Positions 4,291-63,960 are shown, numbered from the stretch's first letter. The stretch is 64,000 nucleotides of DNA from Macrostomum lignano (GCA_002269645.1 NIVC01001822.1:1-64000); one strand, 5' to 3'. The notes: generated from the letters alone by a model not told the origin. Translations and numbers: made by a program.

Positions 4291-4304
4291 TAAGTGAATT
4301 TATA

Positions 4305-30496: not shown

Positions 30497-32318
30497 ATCA
30501 GCTGAGTCACTCAATCCTACTCAACCGAAATACCCAGTCAGCTCAAAAGCTACTCACTCAGCTGAGTCACTCAATCCTACTCAACCAAAACACCCCAGTC
30601 AGCTCAAAAGCTACTCACTCAGCTGAGTCACTCAATCCTACTCAACCGAAACACCCCAGTCAGCTCAAAAGCTACTCACTCAGCTGAGTCACTCAATCCT
30701 ACTCAACCGAAATACCCAGTCAGCTCAAAAGCTACTCACTCAGCTGAGTCACTCAATCCTACTCAACCAAAACACCCCAGTCAGCTCAAAAGCTACTCAC
30801 TCAGCTGAGTCACTCAATCCTACTCAACCAAAACACTCTAGTCAGCTCAAAAGCTACTCACTCAGCTGAGTCACTCAATCCTACTCAACCGAAACACCCC
30901 AGTCAGCTCAAAAGCTACTCACTCAGCTGAGTCACTCAATCCTACTCAACCGAAACACCCCAGTCAGCTCAAAAGCTACTCACTCAGCTGAGTCACTCAA
31001 TCCTACTCAACCGAAACACCCCAGTCAGCTCAAAAGCTACTCACTCAGCTGAGTCACTCAATCCTACTCAACCGAAACACCCAGTCAGCTCAAAAGCTAC
31101 TCACTCAGCTGAGTCACTCAATCCTACTCAACCAAAACACCCCAGTCAGCTCAAAAGCTACTCACTCAGCTGAGTCACTCAATCCTACTCAACCGAAACA
31201 CCCCAGTCAGCTCAAAAGCTACTCACTCAGCTGAGTCACTCAATCCTACTCAACCGAAACACCCCAGTCAGCTCAAAAGCTACTCACTCAGCTGAGTCAC
31301 TCAATCCTACTCAACCAAAACACCCAGTCAGCTCAAAAGCTACTCACTCAGCTGAGTCACTCAATCCTACTCAACCGAAATACCCAGTCAGCTCAAAAGC
31401 TACTCACTCAGCTGAGTCACTCAATCCTACTCAACCAAAACACCCCAGTCAGCTCAAAAGCTACTCACTCAGCTGAGTCACTCAATCCTACTCAACCAAA
31501 ACACTCTAGTCAGCTCAAAAGCTACTCACTCAGCTGAGTCACTCAATCCTACTCAACCGAAACACCCCAGTCAGCTCAAAAGCTACTCACTCAGCTGAGT
31601 CACTCAATCCTACTCAACCGAAACACCCCAGTCAGCTCAAAAGCTACTCACTCAGCTGAGTCACTCAATCCTACTCAACCGAAACACCCCAGTCAGCTCA
31701 AAAGCTACTCACTCAGCTGAGTCACTCAATCCTACTCAACCGAAACACCCAGTCAGCTCAAAAGCTACTCACTCAGCTGAGTCACTCAATCCTACTCAAC
31801 CAAAACACCCCAGTCAGCTCAAAAGCTACTCACTCAGCTGAGTCACTCAATCCTACTCAACCAAAAACACCCCAGTCAGCTCAAAAGCTACTCACTCAGC
31901 TGAGTCACTCAATCCTACTCAACCAAAACACCCAGTCAGCTCAAAAGCTACTCACTCAGCTGAGTCACTCAATCCTACTCAACCAAAACACCCAGTCAGC
32001 TCAAAAGCTACTCACTCAGCTGAGTCACTCAATCCTACTCAACCGAAACACCCAGTCAGCTCAAAAGCTACTCACTCAGCTGAGTCACTCAATCCTACTC
32101 AACCAAAACACCCCAGTCAGCTCAAAAGCTACTCACTCAGCTGAGTCACTCAATCCTACTCAACCAAAAACACCCCAGTCAGCTCAAAAGCTACTCACTC
32201 AGCTGAGTCACTCAATCCTACTCAACCAAAACACCCAGTCAGCTCAAAAGCTACTCACTCAGCTGAGTCACTCAATCCTACTCAACCAAAACACCCAGTC
32301 AGCTCAAAAGCTACTCAA
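30497..32318. repeat. 61-bp tandem array, about 30 copies, immediately 3' of trx copy 1
   Basis: Unit CAGCTGAGTCACTCAATCCTACTCAACCGAAACACCCCAGTCAGCTCAAAAGCTACTCACT. Confidence 0.97.
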
Positions 32319-35300
32319 TCAGTTGAGGAACTTCCTGCAGCTCACGGACCCGCAGTGACAGGCCACCTTGTCCTCCTCCTTATCAAACCGGTAATCGTAC
32401 GTCAGCTCCTCTCCAGCCGCGATGTCCCGCCCAGCAACTATCAGAATTCGCTGGTCCATGACTCGAGTCACGCAGTTTGGTGAGCAGCTGTGGTTGATGA
32501 AGCGCGCTGGGCCACCCTTCATGCTGGCGTCAATCACCCACTGCCAGTTCACCTTGAACAGGTAGCAGTCAATGTTGCGGCTCTGGTAGAATTTCTCCTT
32601 GGCCTCAGACAGGCTGGCTCTGATGAGCTCTCCAGTGTACTCAACTATGAACTCGGCCTTCGCAAACGGCCGCACAGCGAACAGGCCCAGGCCATGGATA
32701 CTGGATGGTAGCACCTGGACTCTGCACTGCCAATGCTCACTGCGGGCCACACGAATCTGGTTGCGCACTGTGGCCACCGCAGCCTCCTCGCTGCACTGCT
32801 GCTCAACTGTCGTCACGGGCCTGCGGGCTGAGCTTAGCAGGAAGCTGAAGGTGCGCTTCAACTGCGAGTTGCCCGCTGCAGCCTCCGGCCTGCTGGCTGC
32901 CTTGAACGGCTCTGAGCGGGCGCAGCCGCTGGCGTTTGGCGAAGACTCCTGCTTGCGCAGCTGCGCCCAGCGGTGGATTAAATACTTAGGAGAATAGCCG
33001 CGGCAGAATCCCAGCTGCTCCACGCACCACACCACTCTGGGATGGACAATTCCTACTGAGCTCCAGCCGTTGCCTGTGAAATTGAGGGAGAAATACTAGG
33101 TGATAGATACTAGGGAATGAAGAAATATCATTTAGTAAGCACTGCATTGCGAATCTAAATGTATAGGATTTGGGATTTGGAATGCAGGAGATTAGAGATG
33201 TGAATACTACAGGATTTGGGATTTGGGATGCAGGGGATTAGAGATGTGAATACTACAGGATTTGGGATTTGGAATGCAGGAGATTAGAGATGTGAATACT
33301 ACAGGATTTAGGATTGGGGATGCAGGGGATTAGAGATGTGAATATTACAGGATTTGGGATTTGGGATGCAGGGGATTAGAGATGTGAATATTACAGGATT
33401 TGGGATTTGGGATGCAGGGGATTAGAGATGTGAATATTACAGGATTTAGGATCTGGGATGTCCCGTTGGATTTTGATTTTCTAAAGTAGGCATGAAAGGT
33501 GAAGAGTTTTACACCTTCTGCCTCACTTTCGCCTCTCTTATGCCTATTTTGTGCCACTTGTGCACCGCGTGTTCACCTGAGTGCCTCTGCAGGGTCAAAA
33601 GGTGAGTTTAAGGCATGAAATATGCGGTAGGGGCACAGGTGTCATAGGGGAGTTGGGTGCATTAAAGGTGCAGTGTGTGCATTGGAGGCACAAAAGGTTA
33701 ACAAAAGGAGGTGCACAGTGGGCACTTTAGGTGTAGAAGCAATGCAAGGGGCATTCCAACTTTTCTTTGCTACTTTTCCTCACTATTCTTTGGAAAGATT
33801 CGAAACCTATTCGCACCTATTTACTCAGGCAAACTGAAAGAAGTAGTTTAATTAGAATCATGTACACCCACCTCGAATTCACCTCAAAATCATGCACTTT
33901 CTGTGCCCCTTCTGCACCTCCCGTGCACCTGCTGTGCCTCACTTATGAGCCTACTGTTCACCTTTTGCGCACCTCTGGTGCCCCTTACACACCTTTACTG
34001 CTCCTACCGCCGCAACCAATCAAAATTGAGAATTCACCTACTGCCTGACCACTTCATCGATTGTACACCTTTCATGCCTCTTTTCAAAAATATTGGTGAT
34101 ACTTAGGCATAAAAGGTGCACTCATGTGCCTTTCCAAAACATGCACGAAATAGGCCACCAAAGTGCCTCTTTTGTGCACCTCGCGCACCTTTTAAGCCTA
34201 TATACACAGGTGCATCACTTTTCCAACAGGTGTAGGGGATTAGAGATTTGAATATTACAGGATTTCGGATGTAGGGGATCAGAAATGTGAATATTACAGG
34301 ATTTGGGATGTAGGATTATAAATGTGAATATTACAGGATTTGGGATTTAGGATGCATTGAATTGGAGATGTGATACATTAGATTTGAATCGAGCATGAGT
34401 TGTGTTTATTAGTTACGGAGGACTAACTGGCTACACTGTCAAGTCCATTTGAAATAGGAATGCTTCCAACATTCAATAAGTTCAGATCAAGGCTACAGCA
34501 GGACAAATCTCTCACCTGCCAGTAGCAGCGGCTTCCGCCCGTTGACCTGCGCTGTCCAGCACTCGCCCACCATCTGGCACAGCCGCCTCATCACCGTGAC
34601 TGGATGGGAGGCGCACAGTCGCAAGGACTCTTCGCGAGACGCCAGCACAAAGCGCACCTTGCCAGCCTCAGCCTGCAGTCTCCAGTCGTAGATGCTGATC
34701 TTGCCAGCCTCCCGGATGCTCCAGAACTGGCGCTGGGCCCTAAAGCCCACAGGCAGCAGCACGGTGCCCATGGAGCCGGACTCTGCACGCAGGCAGCCAA
34801 GCCGGGTGATCAACAGGCCGCCAATCCTGACGGTCACCTCATCAGGCGGCAGGGACACCTCGCAGAGGCTCTGGTCCGCTGCACCCACCACCAGCCGCTG
34901 GCACAACAGGCGGCCAAAGTCGCTGGGCGGAAGGTCGCAGCCTGCAAACTCTGCAATGTCGGCGCAGTCGCTGCAGCGGCACTCGCAGAGGTCGCTGAAC
35001 TGCCAGCCAGACGTCAGGGCGCAGCCAAGGTGACAAACCCGAGGACACGACAGGCTCAGACAATCGATGCTCGCTCCCACCTTGCCGCACTCTGAGCACC
35101 TGTTGCCCCGAGCTCTGCGCACAGCAGCCCGAACTCCCTGAATGCAGTCGCTCTCGTCAACTCGAATCTCCGGCGAGAACAGCGCGCAGCCCGCGTGAAT
35201 CCAGGAGGTCCGCGCGCTTGGCAGCAGCCGCCCGAGCACCGAGTCCTGCTTCCTCTGACCGCACAGCTCGCATTCGCCAGCTCCATCAACTGCAGTCGCC

Positions 35301-37970
35301 TCTCTCAGCTTCCTCACTGACAGCTCCCGGCACTCCTTCATCATCGAGCAGCTCAACGCGTCAGCGTCCACCGGCTCCGGGCATCTTGGCGCTGCATCCA
35401 GGACCTCCGCGCGGAGATCAGCAAGGCGAAGCCACGAGAACAGCGCAGCAACTCCTTTGTCTAGGGCCGTTGACAGCAGCGCACAGTCCGGCAGCTTGTC
35501 AGGGATCTGTGGATGGAGAGGAGGTTGCTTCTGGAATTGCAATGGTTTGCTGAGGATCTGCTACTAGGAGCAGAAAAGGAAGGCTTCTGCCTAGGGTCTG
35601 CTTCTAGAAGTAACAAAGAATGGTTCCCCCGTCTCAGCTTACCTTGCAGGCCTCGATGAGCTCAATGATGATGGCTTTGACCAGGTCGTGTCCCGAGCTG
35701 AACTCCTGGTACGGAGGCATCCTGCAGAAGATCTTCTCAGCCGCAGCCTCATGCCTGGCCTCATCAATGTCGTCCAGGACGCCGTCCAGCTGCTGAGGCC
35801 GAGACGGCAGTCCGAGGCTCTCGCTCAGGGCGCGGATCCTGGCTCGGAGGTCCTTCACGCAGGCGGCCTTCAGAGCGTGGAAGCCCCGAGAGTCGCAGTC
35901 CCGACAGAAAAAGTCCAGCTGCTCGTTCACCAGGTACACGTGGTACAGCTCGTCATTGATGCCAGCGCAGGTGGCGTGCACCACATTCTTGCAGTCTGGG
36001 GTGGAGCACGCCAATGAATTGCCAATCAGAGAGGTGACCCGATGGCACTCGTGGCAAGTCACCTCCGTGCTCTCGCAGTGCTGGCACAAGTTGTCCCAGT
36101 CTGACCAGTCATCGCTGAATACTTTGCCGCAGTGCTTACAGGCTGCACAGTCGCAGCACAGCTGCCAGTCCTTCACGCTGTACCCTCGACTCTCTTCAAG
36201 ACAGTCTGGATGGTAGGCAGCCCCGCACTTGATGCAGCTGCGACACGCTGTCCCAGACCGCTTGCACACTCGGCACACAAGGCAACGGGCGCATCGCCAA
36301 GGTGTCAGGCCGGACCACAGAGGCCGCTCGCATACAGACAGGCAGTACAGGTGAAACTGCTCAGTACAGCAGCTGCATCTCAGCATCAGATCCTGCTCTG
36401 CACCACCGCTACCGCACAATAAGCACTGCGGCTGGCTTATATCGGGCACAGATCCCTTCCGACCGAATACGGCTACTCCATCACGCCAAGCCTCTTCTCT
36501 GTTCGACATCTCCTGCGGCACATCCACTGCCACGGATCCCGTGTCTCCAGTCACTGCCTGCACGCACTGCCGCAGTTGGCCCCGACTCACCGAGTCATAC
36601 AGAGAGCCCATTCGCTGAGCTGCTTCAACTGATGGCCTCTTTATCTTTACAGCTTTCTTGCCACCTGATTCAGCAGAATCAGCCTGAGGCTTTGGTCGCT
36701 CTCCGTAGCGACTCACCCAGCTGGGAAAGCCCTTAGCAACTGAGTAGACAGACAGATCGATGCCCGATTTGAGCACAGCAACAGCCCTGCACTTGGCACA
36801 GCCTCCGCAGTCGCACTCCAAATCGCTCTGCTGACTGGCTGAGCGAAGACTAGCAGTGAAGGCCGTGTAGCAGGTCTTGCAGATGTCAATCTTGCCCTGC
36901 AGCGAGATCAGCAGAGCTGCGCATCCACACACGCTGCAGTAAATCGATCCGCCCTCTGCCTCCTCAACACTCGAGTCCGCAATCTTCATCTTTGCCTTTC
37001 GCTTCGGCTCTGCCACCGCTGCAGTCTCCAGCTTCCCTGCCGCCTCATCACCCGCCAGCTGCTCTTCCTTCACTGCCGCCGCCTCAGGCAGAGCGTCGCT
37101 CTTCCGCTTTCGCCGTCGCTGCTTTTTCTCTGCTGATGAGGCGCCGCCACTGCCGGCTGCTCCCTCGCTGGTCGATCGGCGCTTCTGTTTGCCCGCCTTC
37201 TTCTTTTGCTGCCGTGACGCCTCCTCCGCCATCACCGGCTGCTGCTGCTGCTGCGGCTGCTTTCGACGCTCCCCGCCGCTCTCCTCTTCGTCGATGAATC
37301 GGCGCGGCTTCTTCGACCTCCGCCTGCCGTCATCAGCTGGTGCCGTCTCGTCCGCTGCTTCAGAGGCCGCCGCTGCTGGTTCCGCCTTCACAGCCGCTGC
37401 CTCATCGCCTGCTGACTCTGCCACCGAATCTTCGGCTGCTGACTCTGCCGCCTCGGCCTTCTCTGGCTTGACGACCTCCGCGCTCTCCTGGCCGCTCCGC
37501 TTCGCTGCGCTGTACACAACCACGCCGCACAGGGCTGCCATGTGCTTCTCTTCCAGGCGCTTCAGTCGCTCCGCCTTTGTGCCTCGCTTGTAAGTCGCAT
37601 AGCGCTGGCCAGACTTCACAGACTCCTGCAGCACCCGCAGGCTCATGCTCTGGTGCAGGCGGGTCGTCTTCTTTTCGTTAACTTCGGCTTTGAATTCTAG
37701 CAGCTTTTGAAGTCGTTTTTCAGCACTGAAAACCTTCTGCTTGGCGGGTGTACCGGCAGTTTTACGGGGCCTACCGCGACCTCGGCTGGGTGCAGTGGCA
37801 GCCACGGTGTTTTCAGCGGCAGCGTCGCCAGCAACTGGCGAGGGATCTCTTGAGGCTGGTTCAGATTTGGCTTCGACTTCGTCTTGACCGCTGATGAAAG
37901 CGTGCCAGTCAATTTCCAAGCCTCTTTTTGTAGAGCCTGATAACTCTGGCGATGCTGGTAGTTCAGACAT
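32319..37970 (-). CDS. trx: Compact trithorax/KMT2-type histone H3K4 methyltransferase, copy 1 (3 exons, about 1374 aa)
   Basis: Exons 37970-35643, 35557-34516 and 33073-32319 total 4125 nt in frame. Domains in order: AT-hook (GRGRPRK), NR-type C4 zinc finger, three PHD fingers, ePHD, FYRN, FYRC, WIN motif (GCARSE), SET (IHGLGLF, EYTGE, ARFINHSCSPNC, EELTYDY) and post-SET (CHCGSVSCRKFLN). Confidence 0.9.
33165..33461. repeat. 46-bp minisatellite in trx copy 1 intron 2 (resumes at 34231-34365)
   Basis: GATGTGAATATTACAGGATTTGGGATTTGGGATGCAGGGGATTAGA units. Confidence 0.9.
33462..34230. mobile_element. Non-autonomous CMC/EnSpm-like insertion splitting the 46-bp array
   Basis: Ends CCCGTTGGA / TCCAACAGG, with TGT duplicated on both sides (empty site GGGATGTAGGGG). 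Interior is rich in AGGTG/GTGCAC motifs. Confidence 0.65.
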
Positions 37971-39930
37971 TGGACATGAATTAGGAGGCAGTGAGGCACG
38001 GGGGTAGTTTCAAATGAAAAAATACATTCTCACTTTTTTGATTGTTTGATATTTATAGTTCTAATATACATTCACATGCAGTGCTTATGGAAAATCAAAC
38101 TGTTTTGGCTAGATCTTTTTACACATTACTTGATAAATATTTAATACTTTTAATAAAAACACAAATAGTGAAACTATAAGTTTTGTACTTTGTCTAAACT
38201 TTGTCCTTTATATGTGTGGAGGGCCTTTTTCTTGTACCAAAAATAGAAGTCTTTCTTTTAAAATGAAATGTTTTACTATAGGAGCCTGATTGAAATTATT
38301 TTTGTGAAAGGCATCATATTATTAAAAAAGCACAAAATGCCCACTTACTGATGATATCAGTGAGTGGACAAAGAACATTAATAAATGAATTAATTAGTTT
38401 TTGTGAGTGAATAAATTCACTTATAATGTAAACTTCAAAAATTTAAAATGTATTTTAAAGAATTTTAACTCATTTAAATATATTCTATTCTTTTTGAAAA
38501 TACATGAGGGCTTTCAATTTTAAAGACCTGAAAATCAAAGGACTTTTAATGACTTACAAGTCTTATCTAATGTAGGGCCTATGGTCAATTGCAAACTCAA
38601 AGAAATCCAAATAGGCCTAGATAATTTTCACAATTTCTTTAACTTTATATTTGAATATAGATAACAATGCCAACAAAGATGCAAGTCTAATTTTCAAAAA
38701 TGCCTCTTTTTCATAGGTTCATTTGGCAAAGTAAAAAGGATCTACATTAGATCATAGCTTTAACTAGTCTACCAGTTTGCAGAGTGCCACCAAAATAATT
38801 CTAAGGTTATTAATATCAATGATAAAAACATTTTATTTCAACAATTTTTATCTTGTTGCCTTTGGTTTATGTATATATAAAATTCAAACTTTGAAAATAC
38901 ATTTTATTCACTCTATGTTCTATTTATCAAATATTAACATCTTTTATCTTATCTACTCATTGACACTTGTTCATTTATCAGCATTTTTAAAATAAAAAAT
39001 TATATTTTTTCTAGTATTGCAATTATCTTATATTAAACTACATGTTGCTTTCCTAGTACTACTAGGAATAGTAGCCTAGTAGGATTGCTACTTAAAAAAC
39101 TAAAAAGAATATGGTGCATTAAAAAATATGGTTTCATACTCCTATATCTTTTTAGATGCAACCTTTTATTGTGCCTTTATATAATTAGCTAGGCCTATTA
39201 GCTAGGCCTAACCCTATATAGGCCATAATAGCCCTAGGCATATATAGTAGCCTATACATATATAATGTCAATTGAAACTTAATATGCCTAATTAATACTT
39301 ATATGTTATATTATAAATTTGTAATATTGTAGACCTATCAAATATCAATCTACTCAGAGCAGCCATCTCAGTTAAGGCTTTGTAGTTGTAGTTGCAGTCT
39401 TAGTCTCAACACTCACTTAGACCTACTCATTAGTACTGCCATTTACAACAAAATCATTTTTTGCGCAAGGCAAAAAAATGGTGCAGGTAGAAATGTAAGC
39501 TAATTATTGTTAGTAAAATGAAAGAAACAAATGAAGAAATTCAGTCTAATTTTTTTTGTCATAAATTTTTCTTAGTCACAACTTTCAAAACTTTCAAATC
39601 CCAAAAAATTCTTTTCTAGGCTAAATGAATAAAATGATAAATCAAATGCTTAATGCTTAAAAATAAAAAAATAGTATAAAAATAGTGTGTTTAATTTTAA
39701 GTGCAAACAAAGAGTAGCCATAACTAACAAGTGAAATATCAATGTATCATTATTTGAAGTGGAAATTGAACATTTTGCTACTGTTAGATTGTCAACAATC
39801 CAAAAAAGTCTAATTTGCATAGAAATTTAGGGTCTTTGGGTCTTGCACATTAGGTCCTATTTGCACACTTGTGCAGAAAATTCAAATTTTGAGCATTTAG
39901 CTGTAGCAACACTGCTCTTACCTTTATTAT

Positions 39931-40335
39931 TAGAGGTTGGACGGGATTGAAATCTTAGGGCAGGATCAGGATGGGGAAATATTTTTTCTCGGGATTGGGA
40001 TCGGGATTTGAGAATCGGGATTAGGTCTTTTAGTGTAGTGTAGTGTATTGATATAAAGTTAAAAAAAATTGAGAAAAGATTGTCAAGATCAAGAAGTAAA
40101 ACACAATGAAATTGATATGAAGTTTTGTAACCAACAAATTAAATAATATAACAAGTATAAGTTAAAGCAAAATACCCTCAAGTAATCACTAGGCCTAATT
40201 CTATGAATTTTTAATCAAAAGACCTGCTCCTGAATCTCAAGTTTTTTAGGGTCGGGATTCTGGTCCCGCAGGAATTAAATTTTCCTCGGGATCCCGAGAT
40301 TTCGGCAACAGGATTTGGATCCCATCCGACCTTTA
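39931..40335. mobile_element. hAT-type MITE, 405 bp
   Basis: Ends TAGAGGTTGGACGGGAT / ATCCCATCCGACCTTTA, 8-bp TSD TTTATTAT and GGGAT(T/C) subterminal repeats. Confidence 0.8.
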
Positions 40336-41639
40336 TTTATTATATACATTAGCCTAATGATTAGGCCTAGTCATTATACTACAAAGTCTTGAAAGTCATA
40401 TACGACTATTTTAACGAAGCATATATTGTTTTTGAGCCTTTAGTCTAGACCTTACCACTTAGAAAATTTATCTTCTACAGTGGAGGGTGGAGCCAATTAT
40501 TTAAATATGTCAATTTAGTTAAATTAGTCTATGTCTTGTCTTTATTTCAGTTAAACACAGGACAATTAATTTGGAATATGATAATTTTTGTCTGAGCCAC
40601 ATTATTGACATAGCGCCATGTGCATATTTTTGTTATTGGCAGAGGACCATGGGACAAGCACTGCCTATTTATAGCACTAGGCCCTCTATTTATAATGGCA
40701 GACCTTAAGAAAAAGACTGTCGCGCGCAAGTAGCTAAAATTTAAATAAAAAAAAATCTTTTTGAACAGGTACACAAATACAAAATGTTTTAAACAAAAGT
40801 TAACTGTTAGAAGCTTAGTTAGCTAGGCATAGTCTAAACAGTAAAAGCTGTTAAATTTTAAGCAAAAATATATAAAAGACGTTAGTTAATATTCTGTATT
40901 TTTGCTAATTTATTTATTCGATCATAAGAATTTCATTCACGGTTGCCACCAAAAGCTTGAGTCGACCCGCATAGAAAATAAAAGCCATATTCATGGTTTA
41001 AAATCACTCTATTCTTCCATGTTAGCCAGCCAATCAGGTAAGTCGGAAGAAATTCCTAGTAAAAGTAGGAAGACGGAAGAATTGTTTAATTTAATGAGCG
41101 TCGCGGAAATTTAGGAGTTATGTCCGAATTTATCTACTGCGGTTAGTAGTGCGCAAAGTTTTTTGCAGTAGTAGTAAATGTGGAATTTCATATTTAGAAG
41201 CCCTGACGCCAAATCTCAGCCGTTTTTTGCTCGCCGTAGCAACGCTAGCTCTCACACTATTAAATTTAACAAAAGTACATAACTCTTATCACGGATACGA
41301 GTCTGTTTAATGACAAAAACGTATAATTTTTTCTTAATTTTTACACGGTCTCCAATCTCGATTATTTCTTTATTTAATTTTAACCATAATGCAAGAAAAA
41401 TGAACAGTGATCAGTTGGAGATGCGCGTGGGAAAGAGCGAATGCGTGAATGTATTCACAATATGTCTATAAGTAGAAACTGAAGAAAATAAGAAACAGAA
41501 AAGCAGTGTGTTTTTGGGAATCGCATTTATATCCAAATTTTTTTATGTTATAAGATTTTTTTGCAAATGAATGCAGTTAGCTGACACACTTAGCTTCTAG
41601 GGGGCGAGCAGCTCGTCGAGTAAGTCGCCGCGGACAGCT

Positions 41640-42775
41640 AGCGTCTTCGCCATTTCAAGCTGGGCCTCAGTAGTACTGGCGGAGGATTGTCGATCAATAG
41701 CGTACACAGGAGATACATTGAAAAATCGGCCTCCAATGAAATTTTCACCAATTCTGAGTCTTCCGTCCTTCTACTTAAGTAGTCCTTGCATATAGGAGCC
41801 GGAGTCGCATGTAAGAGCATCACGACCTGAAATATGATAATGAACAGCAAATATAAATGTGCCGTTGAAGTTTAACTTTTATAAATGGCAAACCTTTAGT
41901 GCGCTTTTATTATTATACAATTGCAAAACCTAAAACTTCAAATTATGATAATCATTTCTTTATATTTGCAAGGAAGTGACAGACATTGTTAATTAAGTTT
42001 GAAAAGCCTCCATACCTATTAGTTCGATTAGCAGCTCCTTAGTAACAAAGCTTGGTGGCTGCCGTAGCATCGATCGCAGCATTATAGCCTGAATGGCGAT
42101 GTTAAGTCGCTGTTTGTTTATTGTTACAGCCGGGAGCTCATCATCCAGATTACATGTACATGCCGCCTCATCGCCGTCCTGTCCAGTCGCGATGCCATTT
42201 TGCTCCTCCATCAACCTATCCTGTGGTTCAGGCGTGTTTTCTTGTGTAGCCTGTCCAACCGTCCTACCACCGTGACTCTGGCCGCTGCACAATTCGATCA
42301 ACTTATCGAGCTTTTTGTCCATCTGCTTCAGTCGGACGGTTGCCGATTGTCGGCGCCCCTAAAAAGTTAGGGAAATTCATAAAGCAAAACATAACACAAA
42401 TACTGTACAGCTAATACCACATTTTCTAATCTATAGTTTTGCAAGCTAGCCGCCTACTGTAACAAATAAGTGCCAGGCGCTGTCCAGCATATCATAATTC
42501 TCACCGTCTCTATTCCCATGATTGGGAGGCAGTTCCTGATCAGCGCAAAGGTAGGCAAAGCAGGGACCATCAGAATTCCGGGTTGTAAACTGCTCGAGGA
42601 GCGTCCGTCTACATGTACCATACTTTCCTCCCGTAGCATAGACGTAGAGGAGCCTCTAATTCTTTGCTCGCTGCAGTAATGACGCACAAGTCCTGTTCAT
42701 TGACGGCTTGCATCGCATTCTGAGCAAAGCGAACTACAAACCATTTGTTTAATTGGTGCTCCATGTGCAACCTGA
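41640..42775 (-). pseudogene. Degraded multi-exon coding remnant of unknown type (possible transposon accessory or BEN-like protein)
   Basis: Three GC-richer blocks (about 42775-42500, 42360-41993 and 41830-41640) in AT-rich DNA, two with TTTCAG/TTTTAG acceptors. Internal stops are present and there is no confident domain match. Confidence 0.3.
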
Positions 42776-52596: not shown

Positions 52597-53355
52597 CTAC
52601 ACATGCCTCGTTCGCGAGCGCAATGACATCGCTGGTTGGACCGACCTTGAAGATCTCTGGGGCTTCTGCGATCTCCGACGCATTGGTTTTAGTGGTCCAA
52701 GAGCGGGACACTCGTACTGTTGGGACTGCCGCTGTTCATCCAGCTCGAGCTGCCGCGGCTCCTCCTGCAGTGCGAGTTGCCGTTGGCCGTCCTGTATCTG
52801 CGGATGCCGCTGTTCATCCAGCTCGAGATGCCGCTGCTCGTCTTGCAGCGCGTGCTGCCGCTGCTCCTCATCAGTTGGGCGTGATCGCCGCTGCATGAAA
52901 CGCCGACGGTGCACAGTCGATTGTAGCTGACTGAAGCCGCGCGAGACAACGAGCAGAGAACGAAGAACAGACACATCACATGAAGAAATAAGGAGCCGAA
53001 AGCTCTGCAAAACTTGCTTCCGCAGTCGCTTTGAACTTTGAAAATGGTGACCCGGAATCTCTCGACGTAGGACAACTGACTGCGTCAGATGTGGCTTAGT
53101 TACACGCTGCAGCCAAGCAATGCCATTACCACGGTGGCCTTTGTTTCCACAACCATACACACCGTGCAAAAATGCAACCTTGCTAGGATCGGCTATTAAT
53201 TGGACAACAGACACTCGATCACGTCCGCACCTACGAAATCCGTCTCCGCACCTACACAAGGCAGAACAGCATCCGGTGGGCCTTGTAATAACTGGTCCTA
53301 GAATATGGAAGAGTGCGATTTTAGTCATCAAAAGAGTCAGGAAAGATGGCAACAT
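52597..53355 (-). CDS. Second, convergent ORF of the foldback element (unknown function, about 250 aa)
   Basis: Starts just inside the right arm. Hydrophobic N-terminus, CCSALCRC..C cluster, Q/E/R-rich 11-aa repeats (QRQ.ALQDE) and a basic C-terminus. Confidence 0.35.
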   Translation of the reverse strand: MLPSFLTLLMTKIALFHILGPVITRPTGCCSALCRCGDGFRRCGRDRVSVVQLIADPSKVAFLHGVYGCGNKGHRGNGIAWLQRVTKPHLTQSVVLRREIPGHHFQSSKRLRKQVLQSFRLLISSCDVSVLRSLLVVSRGFSQLQSTVHRRRFMQRRSRPTDEEQRQHALQDEQRHLELDEQRHPQIQDGQRQLALQEEPRQLELDEQRQSQQYECPALGPLKPMRRRSQKPQRSSRSVQPAMSLRSRTRHV

Positions 53356-53424
53356 GGCAGAAGTATCCCAAGAGTTGTACAAAAAGAGAACCTAAAAGTT
53401 CCTACGAGTCTCGCAATTTAACAT

Positions 53425-53712
53425 TCTTGGTATGGAGTTGGTATGGTGTTGGTATACAGTTGGTATAGTTGGTATGTAGTTGGTATGCAGTTGGTATGCA
53501 GTTGGTATGCAGTTGGCATACAGTTGGTATGGAGTTGGTATGCAGTTGGCATGTTGGTATGGAGTTGGTATGGTGTTGGCATGTTGGTATGGAGTTGGTA
53601 TGCAGTTGGCATATTGGTATGGAGTTGATATGGTGTTTGTATACAGTTGGTATACAGTTGGTATACAGTTGGCATGTCAGTATGGAGTTGGTATGCTATT
53701 GGTGTGCAGTTG
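53425..53712. repeat. Inner tandem domain of the right foldback arm
   Basis: Reverse complement of the 45395-46680 modules, but only about 290 bp long. Confidence 0.93.
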
Positions 53713-56700
53713 GCCATAATCTCACCTCTGGACACACATGTTAGAAGCTGTATTTAAATCTCAGTGTGAAACCTTTTTTATATATAAGGTTGATATATAT
53801 AAAACCTATATAAACATATTTCTCTGACACTAGTTACTAGATTTCTTAAAAACTATAAACCTTCTATAGGTATCAGTTTCTAGAACAAAATTTTGATTAA
53901 TGAATGAATGAAATGGCAAGTTTTTAAAAGCAATTGTAACAAATAATTTAGGGATTTACTTTGGAAAGTCAGATTGGAGTTAAGACTAATTTTATTTGAG
54001 CTTCAACTTACAACAATTTTTAAGCTTACTGGCAAATTTACAATTAGAATTTTAAGAGAAAATAAACCTTGCCCAAAAGTATAAATCTACACATATTTTT
54101 TGTCAAACAAAAGCAAAAATATTTCAAATTATAAGCCTCTTTTCTTGGAGCATGCCAAAAATTCACTTTTTTCAAATTTTGCCTTAAGTGATTCTTTTGT
54201 TTTATATTTAATGCCCACAATGGTTTTATTATATTCTATCCATATCTTTATCCTTCATTTCTATATAAGACTTAATAGGTTTATGTTTCCTGGTTTCTAC
54301 ATTGAAATATTTGTAGTGAACATTATTTTTTTCAAGTAAAGTAAATACTTTTTGATTTATCTAAGCAAATATATTGGGAATATAATATAGCCTTAAATAA
54401 AAGAGTATACAATTATACACTATGTAGATTTTTTTTATTTTTTAAGGCTGGCATGCTAAATCTAACTTCACGTGGGCACTTTGAAATAGTAAAATGGAGA
54501 AAACAGTTATACCATAGGGTAATCCTCAACCTTGATCATTTTTATACAAAATCTGAAAATGTTGGCAAATGTACATATGGCATCTTGATTATTATATTTC
54601 CATCTGCATATACATGTTTAGATGTATACATGCATCCAAATTTTGACGAAAAACCCTGATCCATACAACACAAATACTTCAGCATTGGAAAAGCAACAGT
54701 TTCTCTTTTTAAAAACCTTGCAACCCTAAGTGACAGTGTCACAAATGTCCGAGACAAAACAATATGTTGCACGATTTAAAACGGATAGTTTTATTTTCCA
54801 ATGATTCACTAAAAGCTTGAACTTTTAACTTCAACTAAAATGTACAAATACTTGAGGTTCGTCTCCTTGTACGCTTTTAATACCTCAGTGAACTATTTAG
54901 CACACTGCAGCTAATCGTTGTACACGATGCATGTGCACGCTACGCGATAAAAGCCATAATTTGAAAGTCTGGAACGAGTGCACAAAAACAAAATTTCAAA
55001 ATTAAAACTATGCATGGACTGCTTTATTTCATTAAATATGAATTAGGAAGTGTCCTAGACAAATTTAATGCTTGTTCCTAACCGTACGACAGAAACTAAA
55101 GTGTCTGTAGAAGTGTCTGAATAAGTGTCGGCGAATGTTTCATACGTGATAACATTCAAATCTATTACTTTTTTATGCTGCGTTTCATTTATGTGTGTAC
55201 AGAAGTTCAGCCTAATATTTTAACTTCAAACTTTGAAATTAATTTACAGTTAGCTAAGTTTAACAGCCATTTTTTCAACTTTTTTGATCGTGCTTTGTTA
55301 AAGTGCAATGAATTCAAACGCCAGTTTAACTTGGAAGCGATCTTTACTCTCATTCCTAGATAAACCTTGAATATTCACAGTTTAACTTGGAATTTAACCA
55401 GGAATCGGCTTCAATTTTTTAAGCGGGGAGTGGTGTGCAAATCATTAGACTTAGACCGATTTTGTGATCAACATTTACATCAAATTTTGTCCTTTTGTGT
55501 TACATTGGTCGTGTGATTTGATGGCTCGTTTGATGACAGGGTGATTGGGCCTTGCCTTTAGGCTTAAGCGTGGCAAAACATTAAATTATCATGCAGTAGC
55601 AGATTCGAGATAGGGAGGTGCAACAGGCCCCAGGGCAGCTGGCAGCATAGGATGTGTGCCCTCTGATTTCTATCTATTTCTGCTCTTAGTTTTAAATCAT
55701 TTCCATGCTCAAAATGGCCTTCTTTACAAATTTTGTTTAACCAATTAAGCTGTTCTAATTTAGATTTTGCCTCTGAGTCTGATTATGAATTGATGATTTA
55801 TTTTTCTATTGTCTTTTGTTTGTAGCCTTGCTCTTAAGAATTCTTTTTCTTTTGATAGCTAACTGCTTCAGCAGTTGTAGCATTTTCCTAGTTATCTCTA
55901 TAATTGTTTCCTTCATTGAATTTGGTTGATTGTAAAGAATAAAAAGTATAGGCCTATCTTTTATGAGTAATTTGAACTTTTTCAGCTTCTCATGTAAACA
56001 AATATATGAATTTGGCAATATAATGATTTTGCTTCTATACAAGCATGCATATAAAAGTTTTAAAAGTGCTATTTGAGGTTTTCAATTTTAGAAAAATGCT
56101 AAAATAATTGAAGAAAAAAATTTGATACATTCAAAATTCATAAAAAAGTTGAGTATAAGGAAAAAAAAACTTTCATTTCTTTTGCATTCTTATTATTCAG
56201 ATACAGGGTTATATATACCATTACCATGAAGTGTATGATAGAAGTAGATAGTGCCCATGATAGATCTTACAGGCCTTTAGGCTATTAATGATATTCACTT
56301 TACACAGAATAAGCCAGCTTGCAAAATTATCTACTTCTTAGTAAAAGAAGTAACTAAAATAATCATAGTAACACAATTGAATAGTCATTATATTTACCTA
56401 TTGCAAATTGAGCTTCAATAGAAATACAATAAGTTGAAACATTTTTTTATTTGCATGAGTACCCCAAATGCAATATCAACTGTCTTTTCATCAATAAGGG
56501 GCATAAATGTGCAACCCACCTGATTTACACTGGCTATCCAACTTCCTTTTTGACCAAAAATGCAGCTTACGTGTGAAAGAAATCCTAAAGCAAATTTTAT
56601 GCACTTTTGGGTTAATAACAGGAGTAACTATGACTGTCTTATTAAGGATAAATGCTTCGTCATCTAATTAGTACTATGTCTTCTTCGGGTAGGCACTTTT

Positions 56701-56918
56701 GCAACTGATCTTGGCTGGGTCAGCCAGGTGTTGCGCGTGTATAATCAGGGAATGCTTTTAGTTTTCAAAACTGCTATTTTTATAAAGACTGTATGCCAAT
56801 AAACTCTTTAAAGACATGGAATTTATGTTTGAACTTGTATCAGTATAACCGTCTTGTAAGTCAAACCTTTAATTAATGCTTCTGAATAATATTCGAGGAC
56901 TTAATATTACCTGCAGCC

Positions 56919-59900
56919 ATGCCATGGCTACAAGAGGAGATTAACGAGAAGAGAACTGCCCGCCTGCACCAGAGCATGAGCCTGCGGGTGCTGCAGGAGT
57001 CGGTGAAGTCTGGCCAGCGCTATGCGACTTACAAGCGAGGCACAAAGGCGGAGCGACTGAAGCGCCTGGAAGAGAAGCACATGGCAGCCCTGTGCGGCGT
57101 GGTTGTGTACAGCGCAGCGAAGCGGAGCGGCCAGGAGTGCGCGGAGGTCGTCAAGCCGGAGAAGGCCGAGGCGGCAGAGTCAGCAGCCGAAGATTCGGTG
57201 GCAGAGTCAGCAGGCGATGAGGCAGCGGCTGTGAAGGCGGAACCAGCAGCGGCGGCCTCTGAAGCAGCGGACGAGACGGCACCAGCTGATGACGGCAGGC
57301 GGAGGTCGAAGAAGCCGCGCCGATTCATCGACGAAGAGGAGAGCGGCGGGGAGCGTCGAAAGCAGCCGCAGCAGCAGCAGCAGCCGGTGATGGCGGAGGA
57401 GGCGTCACGGCAGCAAAAGAAGAAGGCGGGCAAACAGAAGCGCCGATCGACCAGCGAGGGAGCAGCCGGCAGTGGCGGCGCCTCATCAGCAGAGAAAAAG
57501 CAGCGACGGCGAAAGCGGAAGAGCGACGCTCTGCCTGAGGCGGCGGCAGTGAAGGAAGAGCAGCTGGCGGGTGATGAGGCGGCAGGGAAGCTGGAGACTG
57601 CAGCGGTGGCAGAGCCGAAGCGAAAGGCAAAGATGAAGATTGCGGACTCGAGTGTTGAGGAGGCAGAGGGCGGATCGATTTACTGCAGCGTGTGTGGATG
57701 CGCAGCTCTGCTGATCTCGCTGCAGGGCAAGATTGACATCTGCAAGACCTGCTACACGGCCTTCACTGCTAGTCTTCGCTCAGCCAGTCAGCAGAGCGAT
57801 TTGGAGTGCGACTGCGGAGGCTGTGCCAAGTGCAGGGCTGTTGCTGTGCTCAAATCGGGCATCGATCTGTCTGTCTACTCAGTTGCTAAGGGCTTTCCCA
57901 GCTGGGTGAGTCGCTACGGAGAGCGACCAAAGCCTCAGGCTGATTCTGCTGAATCAGGTGGCAAGAAAGCTGTAAAGATAAAGAGGCCATCAGTTGAAGC
58001 AGCTCAGCGAATGGGCTCTCTGTATGACTCGGTGAGTCGGGGCCAACTGCGGCAGTGCGTGCAGGCAGTGACTGGAGACACGGGATCCGTGGCAGTGGAT
58101 GTGCCGCAGGAGATGTCGAACAGAGAAGAGGCTTGGCGTGATGGAGTAGCCGTATTCGGTCGGAAGGGATCTGTGCCCGATATAAGCCAGCCGCAGTGCT
58201 TATTGTGCGGTAGCGGTGGTGCAGAGCAGGATCTGATGCTGAGATGCAGCTGCTGTACTGAGCAGTTTCACCTGTACTGCCTGTCTGTATGCGAGCGGCC
58301 TCTGTGGTCCGGCCTGACACCTTGGCGATGCGCCCGTTGCCTTGTGTGCCGAGTGTGCAAGCGGTCTGGGACAGCGTGTCGCAGCTGCATCAAGTGCGGG
58401 GCTGCCTACCATCCAGACTGTCTTGAAGAGAGTCGAGGGTACAGCGTGAAGGACTGGCAGCTGTGCTGCGACTGTGCAGCCTGTAAGCACTGCGGCAAAG
58501 TATTCAGCGATGACTGGTCAGACTGGGACAACTTGTGCCAGCACTGCGAGAGCACGGAGGTGACTTGCCACGAGTGCCATCGGGTCACCTCTCTGATTGG
58601 CAATTCATTGGCGTGCTCCACCCCAGACTGCAAGAATGTGGTGCACGCCACCTGCGCTGGCATCAATGACGAGCTGTACCACGTGTACCTGGTGAACGAG
58701 CAGCTGGACTTTTTCTGTCGGGACTGCGACTCTCGGGGCTTCCACGCTCTGAAGGCCGCCTGCGTGAAGGACCTCCGAGCCAGGATCCGCGCCCTGAGCG
58801 AGAGCCTCGGACTGCCGTCTCGGCCTCAGCAGCTGGACGGCGTCCTGGACGACATTGATGAGGCCAGGCATGAGGCTGCGGCTGAGAAGATCTTCTGCAG
58901 GATGCCTCCGTACCAGGAGTTCAGCTCGGGACACGACCTGGTCAAAGCCATCATCATTGAGCTCATCGAGGCCTGCAAGGTAAGCTGAGAAGGGGAACCA
59001 TTCTTTGTTACTGCCAGACGCAGACCCTAGGCAGAAGCCTTCCTTTTCTGCTCCTAGTAGTAGATCCTCAGCAAACCATTGCACTTCCAAAAGCAAGGCA
59101 GTCTTCTTCCCCTAGCTGAGCGAATCGCTCTTCAGGTTCAGGGGCAGATTCAGAGTAATCCTGGGCTACCAGAAGCATTCTGTAGTACTGCTAGAAGCAG
59201 ACCGTGACCAGAAGCCCTCCTTTTCTGCTTCTAGCAGTAGATCCTCATCAGACCATTGCACTCCCAAAAGCACCCCCGCCTATTAATAAGTGAAGTAGAG
59301 AGCTTTAGCTTCCCGATTTAGGCACTGAAGCTTTACGAGTGGCAATTCTAAGTCTCGAGCCTCTTCCTGCGGAAGCCTTCTTAGTAACTCTTTAGTAGCG
59401 TCGGTAGTGCTGCCACCAGTCCGTCTGGTCTCGTCTCCGCCTTAGGTGAGGTGAGCTTCTGTCGGGACGAAAGAAACAAGTCGAGCGAACACAGCACAAT
59501 GTGCAGATTTGCAGCTTACGAACAATGCGTCTCGTCAGTAGATCGTGCTTTTGGGGTTGGCATCAGATGGGTCTCAGACCAATAGCAGTGAATTGAACGT
59601 ACACTCAAACAGAGAATCATAGAGAACGATGAACAACTGGAATGATGAATCAATCCCTGACAGAAACAAGGGTGAAGGGGGGGTCCAATATTCATAGCGC
59701 TGGATTCTCCACTGCCCCAACGCACAAGACCTCGTGACTTTGTTCTATTTTTAGAACTGACGTCACTCTGGGTCTCCGGGCAGAGTGCACTATACTGTGA
59801 CGCAGTGTCTATTTTTAGAAACATGAGTCACTCCTTTCCTTAGAGAAGGGAAGAGCCTTAGGCACGTGACTCTCACATAAACAGGGACCAACAGTAAACA

Positions 59901-62823
59901 TGTTTACTGCACTTTGAAGACTACGAGGAGGCAAGACTTGTCATGTGACTGCTCGCATGATGACAAGGGAAACAGGCCACCAGCGACCACAGGACAGGAG
60001 CAAACGAGAGCGCAGAAAACGGAAAGAGGGAGGCAGAAAAAAGAAAAAAAGGGAACAGCAAACAGGCAGACCAGAGGGAGCGGGAAGCTGACCAGCGGCA
60101 GACTGACTAAGTGCGACGCCTAACACCAACTAGCGGATCACTACATAAGCAATCCTTTTCTGCTACTAGCAGCAGACCGCAGCAGACACCAGCAACCTCT
60201 CCATCCACAGATTCCGAAGAAGTTGCCGGACTGTGCGCTGCTGTCAACGGCCCTGGAAGAAGGAGTTGCTGCGCTGTTCTCGTGGCTTCGCCTTGCTGAT
60301 CTCCGCGCGGAGGTCCTGGATGCAGCGCCGAAGCGCCCGGAGCCGGTTGACGCTGACACGTTGAGCTGCTCGATGGTGAAGGAGTGCCGGGAGCTGTCAG
60401 TGAGGAAGCTGAGAGAGGCGACTGCAGTTGATGGAGCTGGCGAATGCGAGCTGTGCGGTCAGAGGAAGCAGGACTCGGTGCTGGGGCGGCTGCTGCCAAG
60501 CGCGCGGACCTCCTGGATTCACGCGGGCTGCGCGCTGTTCTCGCCGGAGATTCGAGTTGACGAGAGCGACTGCATTCAGGGAGTTCGGGCTGCTGTGCGC
60601 AGAGCTCGGGGCAACAGGTGCTCAGAGTGCGGCAAGGTGGGAGCGAGCATCGATTGTCTGAGCCTGTCGTGTCCTCGGGTTTGTCACCTTGGCTGCGCCC
60701 TGACGTCTGGCTGGCAGTTCAGCGACCTCTGCGAGTGCCGCTGCAGCGACTGCGCCGACATTGCAGAGTTTGCAGGCTGCGACCTTCCGCCCAGCGACTT
60801 TGGCCGCCTGTTGTGCCAGCGGCTGGTGGTGGGTGCAGCGGACCAGAGCCTCTGCGAGGTGTCCCTGCCGCCTGATGAGGTGACCGTCAGGATTGGCGGC
60901 CTGTTGATCACCCGGCTTGGCTGCCTGCGTGCAGAGTCCGGCTCCATGGGCACCGTGCTGCTGCCTGTGGGCTTTAGGGCCCAGCGCCAGTTCTGGAGCA
61001 TCCGGGAGGCTGGCAAGATCAGCATCTACGACTGGAGACTGCAGGCTGAGTCTGGCAAGGTGCGCTTTGTGCTGGCGTCTCGCGAAGAGTCCTTGCGACT
61101 GTGCGCCTCCCATCCAGTCATGGTGATGAGGCGGCTGTGCCAGATGGTGGGCGAGTGCTGGAGTGAGCAGGCTCCCGCTGAGTGTTTGACTTTGCGTGTT
61201 GGTGAGTTTTGATTTTGTTTATTTTTTTCAGGCTCTTTTGCACTGTATGAAATCAATAAAATAGCCAAGATTTTCGCTAGTAATCAGATCTACATTCCAA
61301 ATCCCATGCATCCCAAATCCCATTCATCTCAAATCCCAACATCTCAAATCCCATGCATCCCAAATCCCATGCATCCCAAATCCCATTCATCTCAAATCCC
61401 ATGCATCTCAAATCCCATGCATCCCAAATCCCATTCATCTCAAATCCCATGCATCTCAAATCCCATGCATCTCAAATCCCATGCATCTCAAATCCCATTC
61501 ATCTCAAATCCCATGCATCTCAAATCCCATGCATCTCAAATCCCATGCATCTCAAATCCCATGCATCTCAAATCCCATGCATCTCAAATCCCATGCATCT
61601 CAAATCCCATGCATCTCAAATCCCATGCATCTCAAATCCCATTCATCTCAAATCCCATGCATCTCAAATCCCATGCATCTCAAATCCCATGCATCTCAAA
61701 TCCCATGCATCTCAAATCCCATGCATCTCAAATCCCATGCATTCTAAATCCCATGCATCTCAAATCCCATGCATCTCAAATCCCATGCATTCTAAATCCC
61801 ATGCATCTCAAATCCCATGCATCTCAAATCCCATGCATCTCAAATCCCATGCACCCCCCTCTGAAAGCCAAAGTCACCTATTTATAAAAAAGTCCACACT
61901 CCCCAAAATTGAAGCATGCCGGTTATTTACTTTAACAACATTTATATTTCCTTATTTTATAGTCTACGAGTACATCACACAGATCTTATGCGTTCATGAT
62001 CTGTGCACTTTTAACGAATCAATTAATTGTAAATTTCTCACCCCTCCATTAATTCCTAACTCCCGCAGGCAACGGCTGGAGTTCAGTAGGAATTGTCCAT
62101 CCCAGAGTTGTGTGGTGCCTGGAACAGCTGGGATTCTGCAGCGGCTACTCCCCCATCTACCTGATCCACCGCTGGGCGCAGCTGCGCAAGCAGGAGTCTT
62201 CGCCAAACGCCAGCGGCTGCGCCCGCTCAGAGCCGTTCAAGGCAGCCAGTAGGCCGGAGGCCTCAGCGGGCAACTCGCAGTTGAAGCGCACCTTCAGCTT
62301 CCTGCTGAGCTCAGCCCGCAGGCCCGTGACGACAGTTGAGCAGCAGTGCAGCGAGGAGGCTGCGGTGGCCACAGTTCGCAACCAGATTCGTGTGGCCCGC
62401 AGTGAGCATTGGCAGTGCAGAGTCCAGGTGCTACCATCCAGTATCCATGGCCTGGGCCTGTTCGCTGTGCGGCCGTTTGCGAAGGCCGAGTTCATAGTTG
62501 AGTACACTGGAGAGCTCATCAGAGCCAGCCTGTCTGAGGCCAAGGAGAAATTCTACCAGAGCCGCAACATTGACTGCTACCTGTTCAAGGTGAACTGGCA
62601 GTGGGTGATTGACGCCAGCATGAAGGGTGGCCCAGCGCGCTTCATCAACCACAGCTGCTCACCAAACTGCGTGACTCGAGTCATGGACCAGCGAATTCTG
62701 ATAGTTGCTGGGCGGGACATCGCGGCTGGAGAGGAGCTGACGTACGATTACCGGTTTGATAAGGAGGAGGACAAGGTGGCCTGTCACTGCGGGTCCGTGA
62801 GCTGCAGGAAGTTCCTCAACTGA
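56919..62823 (+). CDS. trx: Compact trithorax/KMT2-type methyltransferase, copy 2 (exons 56919-58979, 59064-59154, 60176-61201, 62069-62823)
   Basis: Inverted paralog of 32319-37970 with the same domains, except that no AT-hook N-terminus is seen. The small exon 59064-59154 is inferred from splice phase. Confidence 0.87.
61285..61855. repeat. 16-bp minisatellite (ATCTCAAATCCCATGC)n in the last intron of trx copy 2
   Basis: About 35 units. Confidence 0.95.
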
Positions 62824-63960
62824 TTGAGTAGCTTTTGAGCTGACTGGGGTATTTTGGTTGAGTAGGATGGAGTGACTCAGCTGAGTGAGTAGCTTTTGAG
62901 TAGACTGGGGTGTTTTGGTTGAGTAGGATTGAGTGACTCAGCTGAGTGAGTAGCTTTTGAGCTGACTAGAGTGTTTTGGTTGAGTGACTCAGCTGAGTGA
63001 GTAGCTTTTGAGCTGACTGGGGTGTTTTGGTTGAGTAGGATTGAGTGACTCAGCTGAGTGAGTAGCTTTTGAGCTGACTGGGGTGTTTTGGTTGAGTAGG
63101 ATTGAGTGACTCAGCTGAGTGAGTAGCTTTTGAGCTGACTGGGGTGTTTCGGTTGAGTAGGATTGAGTGACTCAGCTGAGTGAGTAGCTTTTGAGCTGAC
63201 TGGGGTGTTTCGGTTGAGTAGGATTGAGTGACTCAGCTGAGTGAGTAGCTTTTGAGCTGACTGGGGTGTTTCGGTTGAGTAGGATTGAGTGACTCAGCTG
63301 AGTGAGTAGCTTTTGAGCTGACTGGGGTGTTTCGGTTGAGTAGGATTGAGTGACTCAGCTGAGTGAGTAGCTTTTGAGCTGACTGGGGTGTTTCGGTTGA
63401 GTAGGATTGAGTGACTCAGCTGAGTGAGTAGCTTTTGAGCTGACTGGGGTGTTTCGGTTGAGTAGGATTGAGTGACTCAGCTGAGTGAGTAGCTTTTGAG
63501 CTGACTGGGGTGTTTCGGTTGAGTAGAACTGAGTGACTCAGCTGAGTGAGTAGCTTTTGAGCTGACTGGGTATTTCGGTTGAGTAGGATTGAGTGACTCA
63601 GCTGATTGAGTAGCTTTTGAGCTGACTGGGGTGTTTTGGTTGAGTAGGATTGAGTGACTCAGCTGATTGAGTAGCTTTTGAGCTGACTGGGTGTTTCGGT
63701 TGAGTAGGATTGAGTGACTCAGCTGAGTGAGTAGCTTTTGAGCTGACTGGGGTGTTTTGGTTGAGTAGGATTGAGTGACTCAGCTGAGTGAGTAGCTTTT
63801 GAGCTGACTGGGTATTTCGGTTGAGTAGGATTGAGTGACTCAGCTGAGTGAGTAGCTTTTGAGCTGACTGGGTATTTCGGTTGAGTAGGATTGAGTGGCT
63901 CAGCTGAGTGAGTAGTAGTTTTGGTTGTTTTTGGTTGAGTAGGGCTTAATGACTCAGCTG
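62820..63960. repeat. 61-bp tandem array, about 18 copies, inverted counterpart of 30497-32318
   Basis: Reverse-complement units start at the trx copy 2 stop codon. Confidence 0.96.

Follow-up and report, generated by a model that had tools for sequence, protein, structure and literature searches.

A mosaic head-to-head pair of trithorax-related methyltransferase genes in Macrostomum lignano, with exon interiors probably homogenised by gene conversion

Concerted evolution of linked paralogues has long been known, for example in the human gamma-globin genes HBG1 and HBG2 and in the inverted hsp70 pair at Drosophila 87A7, and large palindromes with arm-to-arm gene conversion are known from human and ape Y chromosomes. 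Here we describe two copies, A and B, of a putative trithorax-related (Trr, KMT2C/D-type) histone H3K4 methyltransferase gene, which lie head to head on contig NIVC01001822.1 of the flatworm Macrostomum lignano (assembly Mlig_3_7, GCA_002269645.1); positions 1–64000 of this contig, the whole 64,000-nt stretch analysed, are referred to as the window. The pair very probably represents an old head-to-head duplication in which the exon interiors have been repeatedly homogenised by gene conversion. It resembles the globin and hsp70 pairs in that near-identical tracts are flanked by much older divergence, in that tracts end at heterologous or simple-sequence DNA, in that synonymous sites are homogenised, and in that paralogues within a genome are closer than orthologues between genomes. 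It differs from them in comprising a three-exon chromatin-modifier gene of a neopolyploid, in that heterologous introns delimit each of its three separate tracts, in the 5' truncation of one copy, which uses a private start codon, and in that the lineages compared are subgenome copies, not species.

M. lignano has three subgenomes, with a single-nucleotide polymorphism divergence of ~2.2% genome-wide and 1.1% in coding sequence (CDS) (PMC10733133). Mlig_3_7 was assembled from PacBio continuous long reads with Canu and polished using Pilon with Illumina DNA and RNA-seq reads (PMC5730564). Three loci, all subgenome or haplotype contigs within this one assembly, were compared: NIVC01001822.1 (the window, copies Awin and Bwin), NIVC01003729.1 (A3729 and B3729), and NIVC01001821.1 (A1821). 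Sister contigs match the left part of the window at 99.7%, 98.9%, and 97.6% identity. NIVC01003729.1 carries both genes head to head and is 99.5–99.7% identical to the window, including the private introns and upstream DNA, and NIVC01001821.1 carries an A copy ~98–99% identical to that of the window. A B partner was sought on NIVC01001821.1 and not found; homology to the window ends there 2 kb upstream of A, beside 412 N.

Copy A (minus strand, 37970–32319) encodes 1357 residues and copy B (plus strand, 56919–62823) 1268 residues; the reading frames of both are intact, and their GT-AG introns have equal phases. Comparison of the two strands identified three inverted blocks, 35525–37681/59096–56941 (99.3% identity), 34555–35521/61162–60196 (98.2%), and 31219–33076/63915–62066 (96.5%, including a 61-bp tandem array). 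The two arrays directly follow the stop codons of A and B and have unit variants in common. Within the common CDS of 3807 nt there are 81 differences, which are strongly clustered, all but a few sitting in five blocks that adjoin introns or the duplication breakpoint. In exon 1, 17 differences lie at the 5' edge (CDS 0–39), 3 in an adjoining shoulder (40–239), and 0 in the interior (240–2062). Exon 2 has 15 in its first 164 nt (2063–2226), 3 in its interior (2227–3012), and 25 in its last 39 nt (3013–3050), and exon 3 has 13 at its start (3065–3146), 5 in a shoulder (3147–3359), and 0 in its interior (3360–3806). Divergence thus rises toward each heterology, i.e. the exon 1 breakpoint, the 1.1 kb that B carries in addition within the otherwise homologous intron 1, and intron 2. 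The introns 2 have related minisatellites, with units of 46 bp in A and 16 bp in B and a common CCCAAATCC motif, but no alignment was found between their unique parts.

The longest identical run is 1823 nt, compared with a maximum of 615 in 20000 permutations (analytic P ~1e-21), and the run-length P is still 2e-10 without the two most extreme blocks; the maximum chi-square is 316, against at most 32 in permutations. A clustering test had been proposed in a sequence-only reading of the window, and its outcome lies far beyond chance: divergence is not uniform. That reading had described an inverted trithorax gene pair with almost identical exon cores, a common 3' array, and diverged exon edges, and the mosaic inverted gene pair is confirmed, including all of the peptide contrasts named for the edges (EFKAEVNEKKTTR/LQEEINEKRTAR, IPDKL..LDKG/IPKKL..LEEG, and WTAQVNGRKPLLLAG/WSEQAPAECLTLRVG) and the synonymous changes at the start of the SET exon (9 of the 13 differences in the first 95 nt). 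Two of its statements hold in part. The last introns, said not to align, do not do so in their unique parts, but they have the related minisatellites; the switches from diverged to identical sequence, said to be sharp, are graded by shoulders at four of the five limits.

Synonymous and nonsynonymous divergence (dS and dN) were calculated by the Nei-Gojobori method. In the cores, i.e. the exon interiors, dS is 0–0.005 over ~765 synonymous sites. The start of exon 3 has a dS of 0.58 and a dN of 0.056 (dN/dS ~0.1), and the next 71 codons a dS of 0.08; dS is 0.18 at the start of exon 2 and saturated at its end. The edges therefore carry old divergence, built up while both copies were under constraint. 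The cores hold the PHD, ePHD, FYRN, and SET domains, and purifying selection alone might be invoked for the identity of the catalytic and zinc-finger regions despite the age of the copies. Because the core identity includes silent sites, selection on the protein cannot explain it, and the contrast with a dS of 0.18–0.58 or more at the edges refutes this proposal, to which we assign a negligible probability; moreover, core 1 includes a low-complexity acidic/basic region that is variable in the copy on NIVC01001821.1.

Comparison with the other contigs reveals that cores and edges have incongruent groupings. Divergence between A and B is 0.18% in the cores and 20.5% in the edges within NIVC01001822.1, and 0.34% and 20.2%, respectively, within NIVC01003729.1; between A copies, it is 0.92% and 3.8% for NIVC01001822.1 versus NIVC01001821.1, and 0.15% and 0.9% for NIVC01001822.1 versus NIVC01003729.1. 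In the cores A is therefore nearer to its neighbour B than to the homeologous A1821, whereas the edges place all A copies together and apart from B. Exon 1 contains 21 sites at which Awin, A3729, Bwin, and B3729 agree and A1821 is different, giving a binomial P of 4e-5 for A–B being no younger than the A–A split (equal ages). The subgenome CDS divergence of 1.1% likewise exceeds that between the A and B cores (PMC10733133).

The limits of the homogenised tracts also differ between contigs. A1821 has a B-like intron 1 (at 12425–12490 of the extracted locus, L008), with 70 nt in common with B that are missing from Awin. At the exon 2 edge, a stretch of 107 nt in A1821 contains 9 additional differences, all at sites where Awin matches B (P = 2e-5 versus background); none of them changes the protein, as judged by PAA63700 against the A model. 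At several further sites A3729 equals A1821 while Awin equals B, a pattern that fits a very recent B-to-A transfer but that exchange among subgenome copies could also produce. The core/edge incongruence, together with tract limits that differ between contigs, supports gene conversion that has been ongoing since the subgenomes diverged.

In a quite different history, the duplication would be recent, and conversion from a diverged third paralogue, or hypermutation around unstable minisatellites and indels, would later have replaced the introns and adjoining exon ends. Counted as tracts this history is no less economical, since two replacements centred on introns and one at an end match the three conversions needed for the cores, and every diverged block does adjoin indels or minisatellites. 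However, the cores are younger than the subgenome split and the edges older, so that the edges pre-date the cores; the 13 M. lignano proteins in the cluster are all A-type or B-type, with no third kind of paralogue; and the only closer relative in a HMMER scan of 1.84 billion representatives, a fragment of 251 residues with 75% identity, fits neither edge type. The edge differences are also largely synonymous (as at the start of exon 3), which fits long constrained divergence and not mutational noise, and divergence falls off gradually along exon 3, from 13 differences in 95 nt to 5 in 213 and 0 in 447. We consider a recent duplication highly improbable.

We considered whether the identity could have been produced during assembly, with copies that are ~1% different throughout being made identical in their interiors by Canu correction or by Pilon with multi-mapping reads. 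Pilon was run with DNA and RNA-seq reads, and the latter touch exons only (PMC5730564); paralogue collapse is a known problem in this neopolyploid genome (PMC10733133). In these very exons, however, A1821 came through the same pipeline with its 0.9% divergence retained, which shows that differences on this scale are not erased; lone differences separating A from B, or one A copy from another, were retained as well. The mosaic recurs on NIVC01003729.1, a structurally different contig that lacks a transposon present in the window (see below). Polishing can neither yield unalignable introns beside identical exons nor generate the edge/core incongruence. Identical A and B proteins are also present among UniRef entries, which we take to derive from the earlier ML2 assembly, made with another assembler. 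An artefact of this kind appears very unlikely.

The favoured explanation, gene conversion after an old inverted duplication, which the sequence-only reading had already put forward, draws on the core/edge dS contrast, the incongruent groupings, and the contig-specific tract limits. We propose that an old head-to-head duplication produced two Trr-type copies, of which B would have been truncated at its 5' end and would have come to use a start codon and upstream region of its own. Introns, adjoining exon ends, and flanks would then have diverged, some of them beyond alignment, while the exon interiors would have been repeatedly overwritten by DNA-templated, non-reciprocal recombination between the two copies, which lie inverted on one chromosome. 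No conversion tract could enter the heterologous introns or the duplication breakpoint, and the last 40–300 nt of each homology block would therefore be converted less often, leaving graded shoulders of mostly synonymous old divergence. Interior tracts and rising divergence at the edges are to be expected of events with variable end points whose heteroduplex is unable to spread into non-homologous sequence. Conversion would have continued after the three subgenomes separated, giving tracts that differ between subgenome copies. We infer both the molecular mechanism, i.e. intrachromosomal pairing of inverted repeats with heteroduplex repair, and the direction of transfer.

Homogenisation through RNA, in which spliced transcripts or cDNA serve as templates for repair so that introns escape, would account for high identity that is mainly exonic and for an intron 2 that is not common to the copies. 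A cDNA template would, however, convert exon ends across the splice junctions, and it is exactly those ends that stay diverged. Furthermore, the first tract runs ~30 nt into intron 1 unchanged, intron 1 is alignable, and the downstream 61-bp arrays are common to both copies. We regard RNA templating as extremely unlikely.

Several observations weigh against the conversion model or qualify it. The exact zero divergence in the cores rests on one PacBio data set (Canu, with Pilon polishing by Illumina and RNA-seq reads). Divergence in the block at the end of exon 2 (25 of 39 nt) exceeds what the other edges would lead one to expect, and these 13 codons may have a different history. A signature of GC-biased conversion was sought and none was found, GC content at third codon positions (GC3) being 0.70–0.78 in the cores and 0.63–0.76 in neighbouring genes. 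Exchange among subgenome copies, in place of A–B exchange, could account for some of the shared-site patterns. Finally, the sole outgroup fragment, L009, fixes neither the age of the duplication nor the polarity of most changes. This fragment (a 1024-bp Logan contig from SRR31628403 comprising exon 3 only) is an exon 3 homologue with 76% nucleotide and 75% amino acid identity and the same acceptor context as A and B (CAG followed by GCAACGGCTGGAGC); at 18 diagnostic sites it is A-like at 8, B-like at 5, and neither at 5, and is thus equidistant from A and B.

An extension of the conversion model is that the pair is maintained as Trr-type genes with distinct functions, the long form having an AT-hook N-terminus and the short form beginning its FYRC region differently. 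Selection would then preserve the edge differences while conversion keeps the zinc-finger and catalytic cores identical, and the intronic minisatellites and 3' arrays would be break sites that seed conversion. We consider this unlikely.

The likeness to palindromic gene pairs that the sequence-only reading had drawn did not survive analysis of the arms. Homology between the arms is confined to the gene body, beginning at codon 90 of A and ending where the 61-bp array ends: no homology was found between the two sides beyond the arrays, even with 9 kb of extra sequence that continues the window to position 73118 (locus L005), nor upstream of the two genes. Without an inserted transposon the gene spacer is ~7.8 kb and consists of private DNA, 6.3 kb next to A and 1.8 kb next to B. 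The inner inverted repeat (43961–45671/55147–53427) constitutes the ends of an 11.2-kb element with 1.7-kb terminal inverted repeats (TIRs) that are 99% identical. An 8-bp direct repeat, GATAACAT, flanks the element at 43953–43960 and 55148–55155, and NIVC01003729.1 has the empty site, with contiguous flanks and a single GATAACAT. The flanking duplication and the empty site identify the inner repeat as a TIR DNA transposon insertion that is private to this contig and separate from the gene duplication.

A large palindrome of the Y-chromosome type was therefore rejected. The pair is similar to Y palindromes with respect to its inverted orientation on one chromosome and the proposed non-reciprocal exchange. 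However, its arms are short (~7 kb) and not uniformly identical: neither intron 2 nor 1.1 kb of intron 1 aligns, and the same holds for the 5' regions and for the flanks past the arrays. Nor are the arms separated by only a short unique spacer, as the ancestral ~7.8 kb, composed of the two stretches of private DNA, now also holds the 11.2-kb transposon, whose inverted repeats give the appearance of inner arms. The ends of the element contain 11-bp satellites (45394–46671 and 53427–53713). Its open reading frame (ORF) for 778 residues (46750–49086) gave no match in Pfam (E ≤ 10) or in a PDB sequence search, and an exact look-up of the transposon ORF product and of the ORF-level product of copy A exon 1 gave no match either. 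A short ORF in the transposon (50291–50581) contains GHYIAYV, which by eye is like the His-box of ubiquitin-specific proteases.

The sequence-only reading had called the pair trithorax genes; the proteins are, though, Trr (KMT2C/D)-like and not Trx proper. SET and post-SET domains are at the C-terminus (PF00856, E = 2e-24 to 2e-25), where the last residues are CHCGSVSCRKFLN and the sequence lines up with the C-terminal end of KMT2D. The ePHD (PF13832) is above the Pfam cut-off, FYRN (PF05964) lies at its cut-off of 24 bits, with 26 for the exon 2 product alone and 23.8 for the whole protein, the PHD match is weak and below cut-off, and no Pfam FYRC was reported at E ≤ 0.1. The region from FYRN to the C-terminus aligns without break to KMT2D (E = 1.7e-49), FYRN-SET corresponding to KMT2D residues 898–1256. 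In the PDB sequence search KMT2D was the best match (1.7e-49), followed by KMT2C (6e-41), KMT2A (7e-38), and SET1 (1.6e-34), so that, by search score, KMT2C/D come out ahead of KMT2A/B and SET1. On the basis of the unbroken alignment and these scores, the gene is therefore predicted to be a short Trr-type histone H3K4 methyltransferase gene. Its GCARSEP motif is presumably a WDR5-interaction (Win) motif like that of MLL proteins.

The predicted proteins and KMT2C, KMT2D, and Drosophila Trr have in common GCARSEP, SET, post-SET, and the CRKFLN end, and probably also the succession of ePHD, FYRN, and an adjacent FYRC-like region. They differ in length, with 1268–1357 residues compared with 4000–5900 for most relatives found, in having only 31–39% identity, in that Pfam FYRC is not called here at that threshold, and in having no HMG box and no N-terminal PHD cluster. 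The HMMER scan returned mainly proteins of 2000–5900 residues at this level of identity.

Both copies are annotated genes in Mlig_3_7 (Table 1). The copy B model equals UniRef A0A1I8I4K7 exactly, and the copy A model contains A0A1I8HP29 and PAA63692 exactly. The deposited B-type models PAA50043 and PAA63693 begin upstream of the ATG and are marked partial; they omit IPKKL at the start of exon 2 and end in FLS, not FLN. Copy B is without the first 89 codons of A and starts at its own ATG; a counterpart of these codons was sought on the B side and none was found. The A-only codons have a GC3 of 0.43, versus 0.73 in the rest of the gene, and are annotated as coding on three contigs. In the last 13 codons of exon 2 (34516–34554/61163–61201), the start of the FYRC-like region, length, phase, and the GTGAG donor are the same in both copies. 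A small mobile element may account for the insert of ~740 bp in intron 2 of A (33480–34215), in which GGTGCAC-like motifs are abundant on either strand.

Table 1. Positions in the window of the two gene copies, their diverged and homogenised segments, and the intervening and adjoining DNA
Feature	Position	Strand	Remarks
61-bp tandem array, ~30 units	30489–32327	-	Found by TRF; directly after copy A stop codon; distal limit of arm homology
Copy A exon 3	32319–33073	-	FYRC-like region, Win-like GCARSEP, SET, post-SET ending CRKFLN
Copy A exon 3, core 3	32319–32765	-	Identical to B
Copy A exon 3, diverged 5' edge	32979–33073	-	
Copy A intron 2	33074–34515	-	46-bp and 37–39-bp minisatellite, split by ~740 bp insert
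Copy A exon 2	34516–35506	-	ePHD, FYRN
Copy A exon 2, 3' edge	34516–34554	-	25 differences in 39 nt
Copy A exon 2, core	34555–35340	-	Nearly identical to B, 3 differences
Copy A exon 2, 5' edge	35341–35506	-	15 differences
Copy A intron 1	35507–35642	-	136 nt; homologous to ends of B intron 1
Copy A exon 1	35643–37970	-	PHD fingers
Copy A exon 1, core 1	35643–37661	-	3 differences from B in 2019 nt
Copy A exon 1, diverged edge	37662–37703	-	
A-only N-terminus	37704–37970	-	AT-hook-like GRGRPRK
A-side intergenic DNA	37971–43960	.	No B-side counterpart; 99.7% identity to NIVC01003729.1
TIR DNA transposon between genes	43961–55147	.	Not part of gene duplication
B-side upstream DNA	55148–56918	.	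Unrelated to A upstream or A N-terminal coding sequence
Copy B exon 1	56919–58979	+	Own ATG; diverged edge 56919–56960, core 1 56961–58979
Copy B intron 1	58980–60210	+	1.1 kb extra versus A (59097–60195), including local 100-nt duplicate
Copy B exon 2	60211–61201	+	Core 60377–61162; diverged edges 60211–60376 and 61163–61201
Copy B intron 2	61202–62068	+	16-bp minisatellite 61298–61853, motif related to arrays in A's intron
Copy B exon 3	62069–62823	+	Diverged edge 62069–62163, shoulder to 62376, identical core 62377–62823
61-bp tandem array, ~18 units	62815–63960	+	After copy B stop codon; ends within window

Elsewhere in the window, positions 1–4536 are probably another DNA transposon with array-built ends: MULE-like ORFs at 2412–3663 (weak PF10551 match) are flanked by mirrored 29-, 21-, and 16-bp arrays (1–529, 1417–1494, and 1506–1626 versus 3961–4079, 4091–4284, and 4303–4536). 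A Usp ORF lies at 4613–5107. The 10 kb before the pair contain an ORF rich in QPGYGAP repeats and long minisatellites (19605–20399, 22270–22876, 23948–24686, and 29290–29713), the latter with 62-bp units repeated 9.7 times, 21-bp units repeated 35 times, and 30-bp units repeated 14 times.

Within the literature collection searched, no paper joined M. lignano with gene conversion at this locus. The pair belongs to the long-known class of linked paralogues that evolve in concert, and is a clear but ordinary case that reveals no new mechanism. It provides a well-resolved M. lignano example of linked paralogues exchanging sequence on the same timescale as subgenome divergence, which matters for the dating of duplicates by synonymous divergence (Ks) and for separating paralogues from homeologues in this difficult assembly. 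More generally, it illustrates how heterologous introns may act as barriers that split conversion into exon-interior tracts with graded shoulders. It also matters for copy-specific knock-down or knock-out of a chromatin regulator relevant to stem-cell biology, since the copies can be told apart solely by their exon edges, their introns, and the N-terminus private to A.

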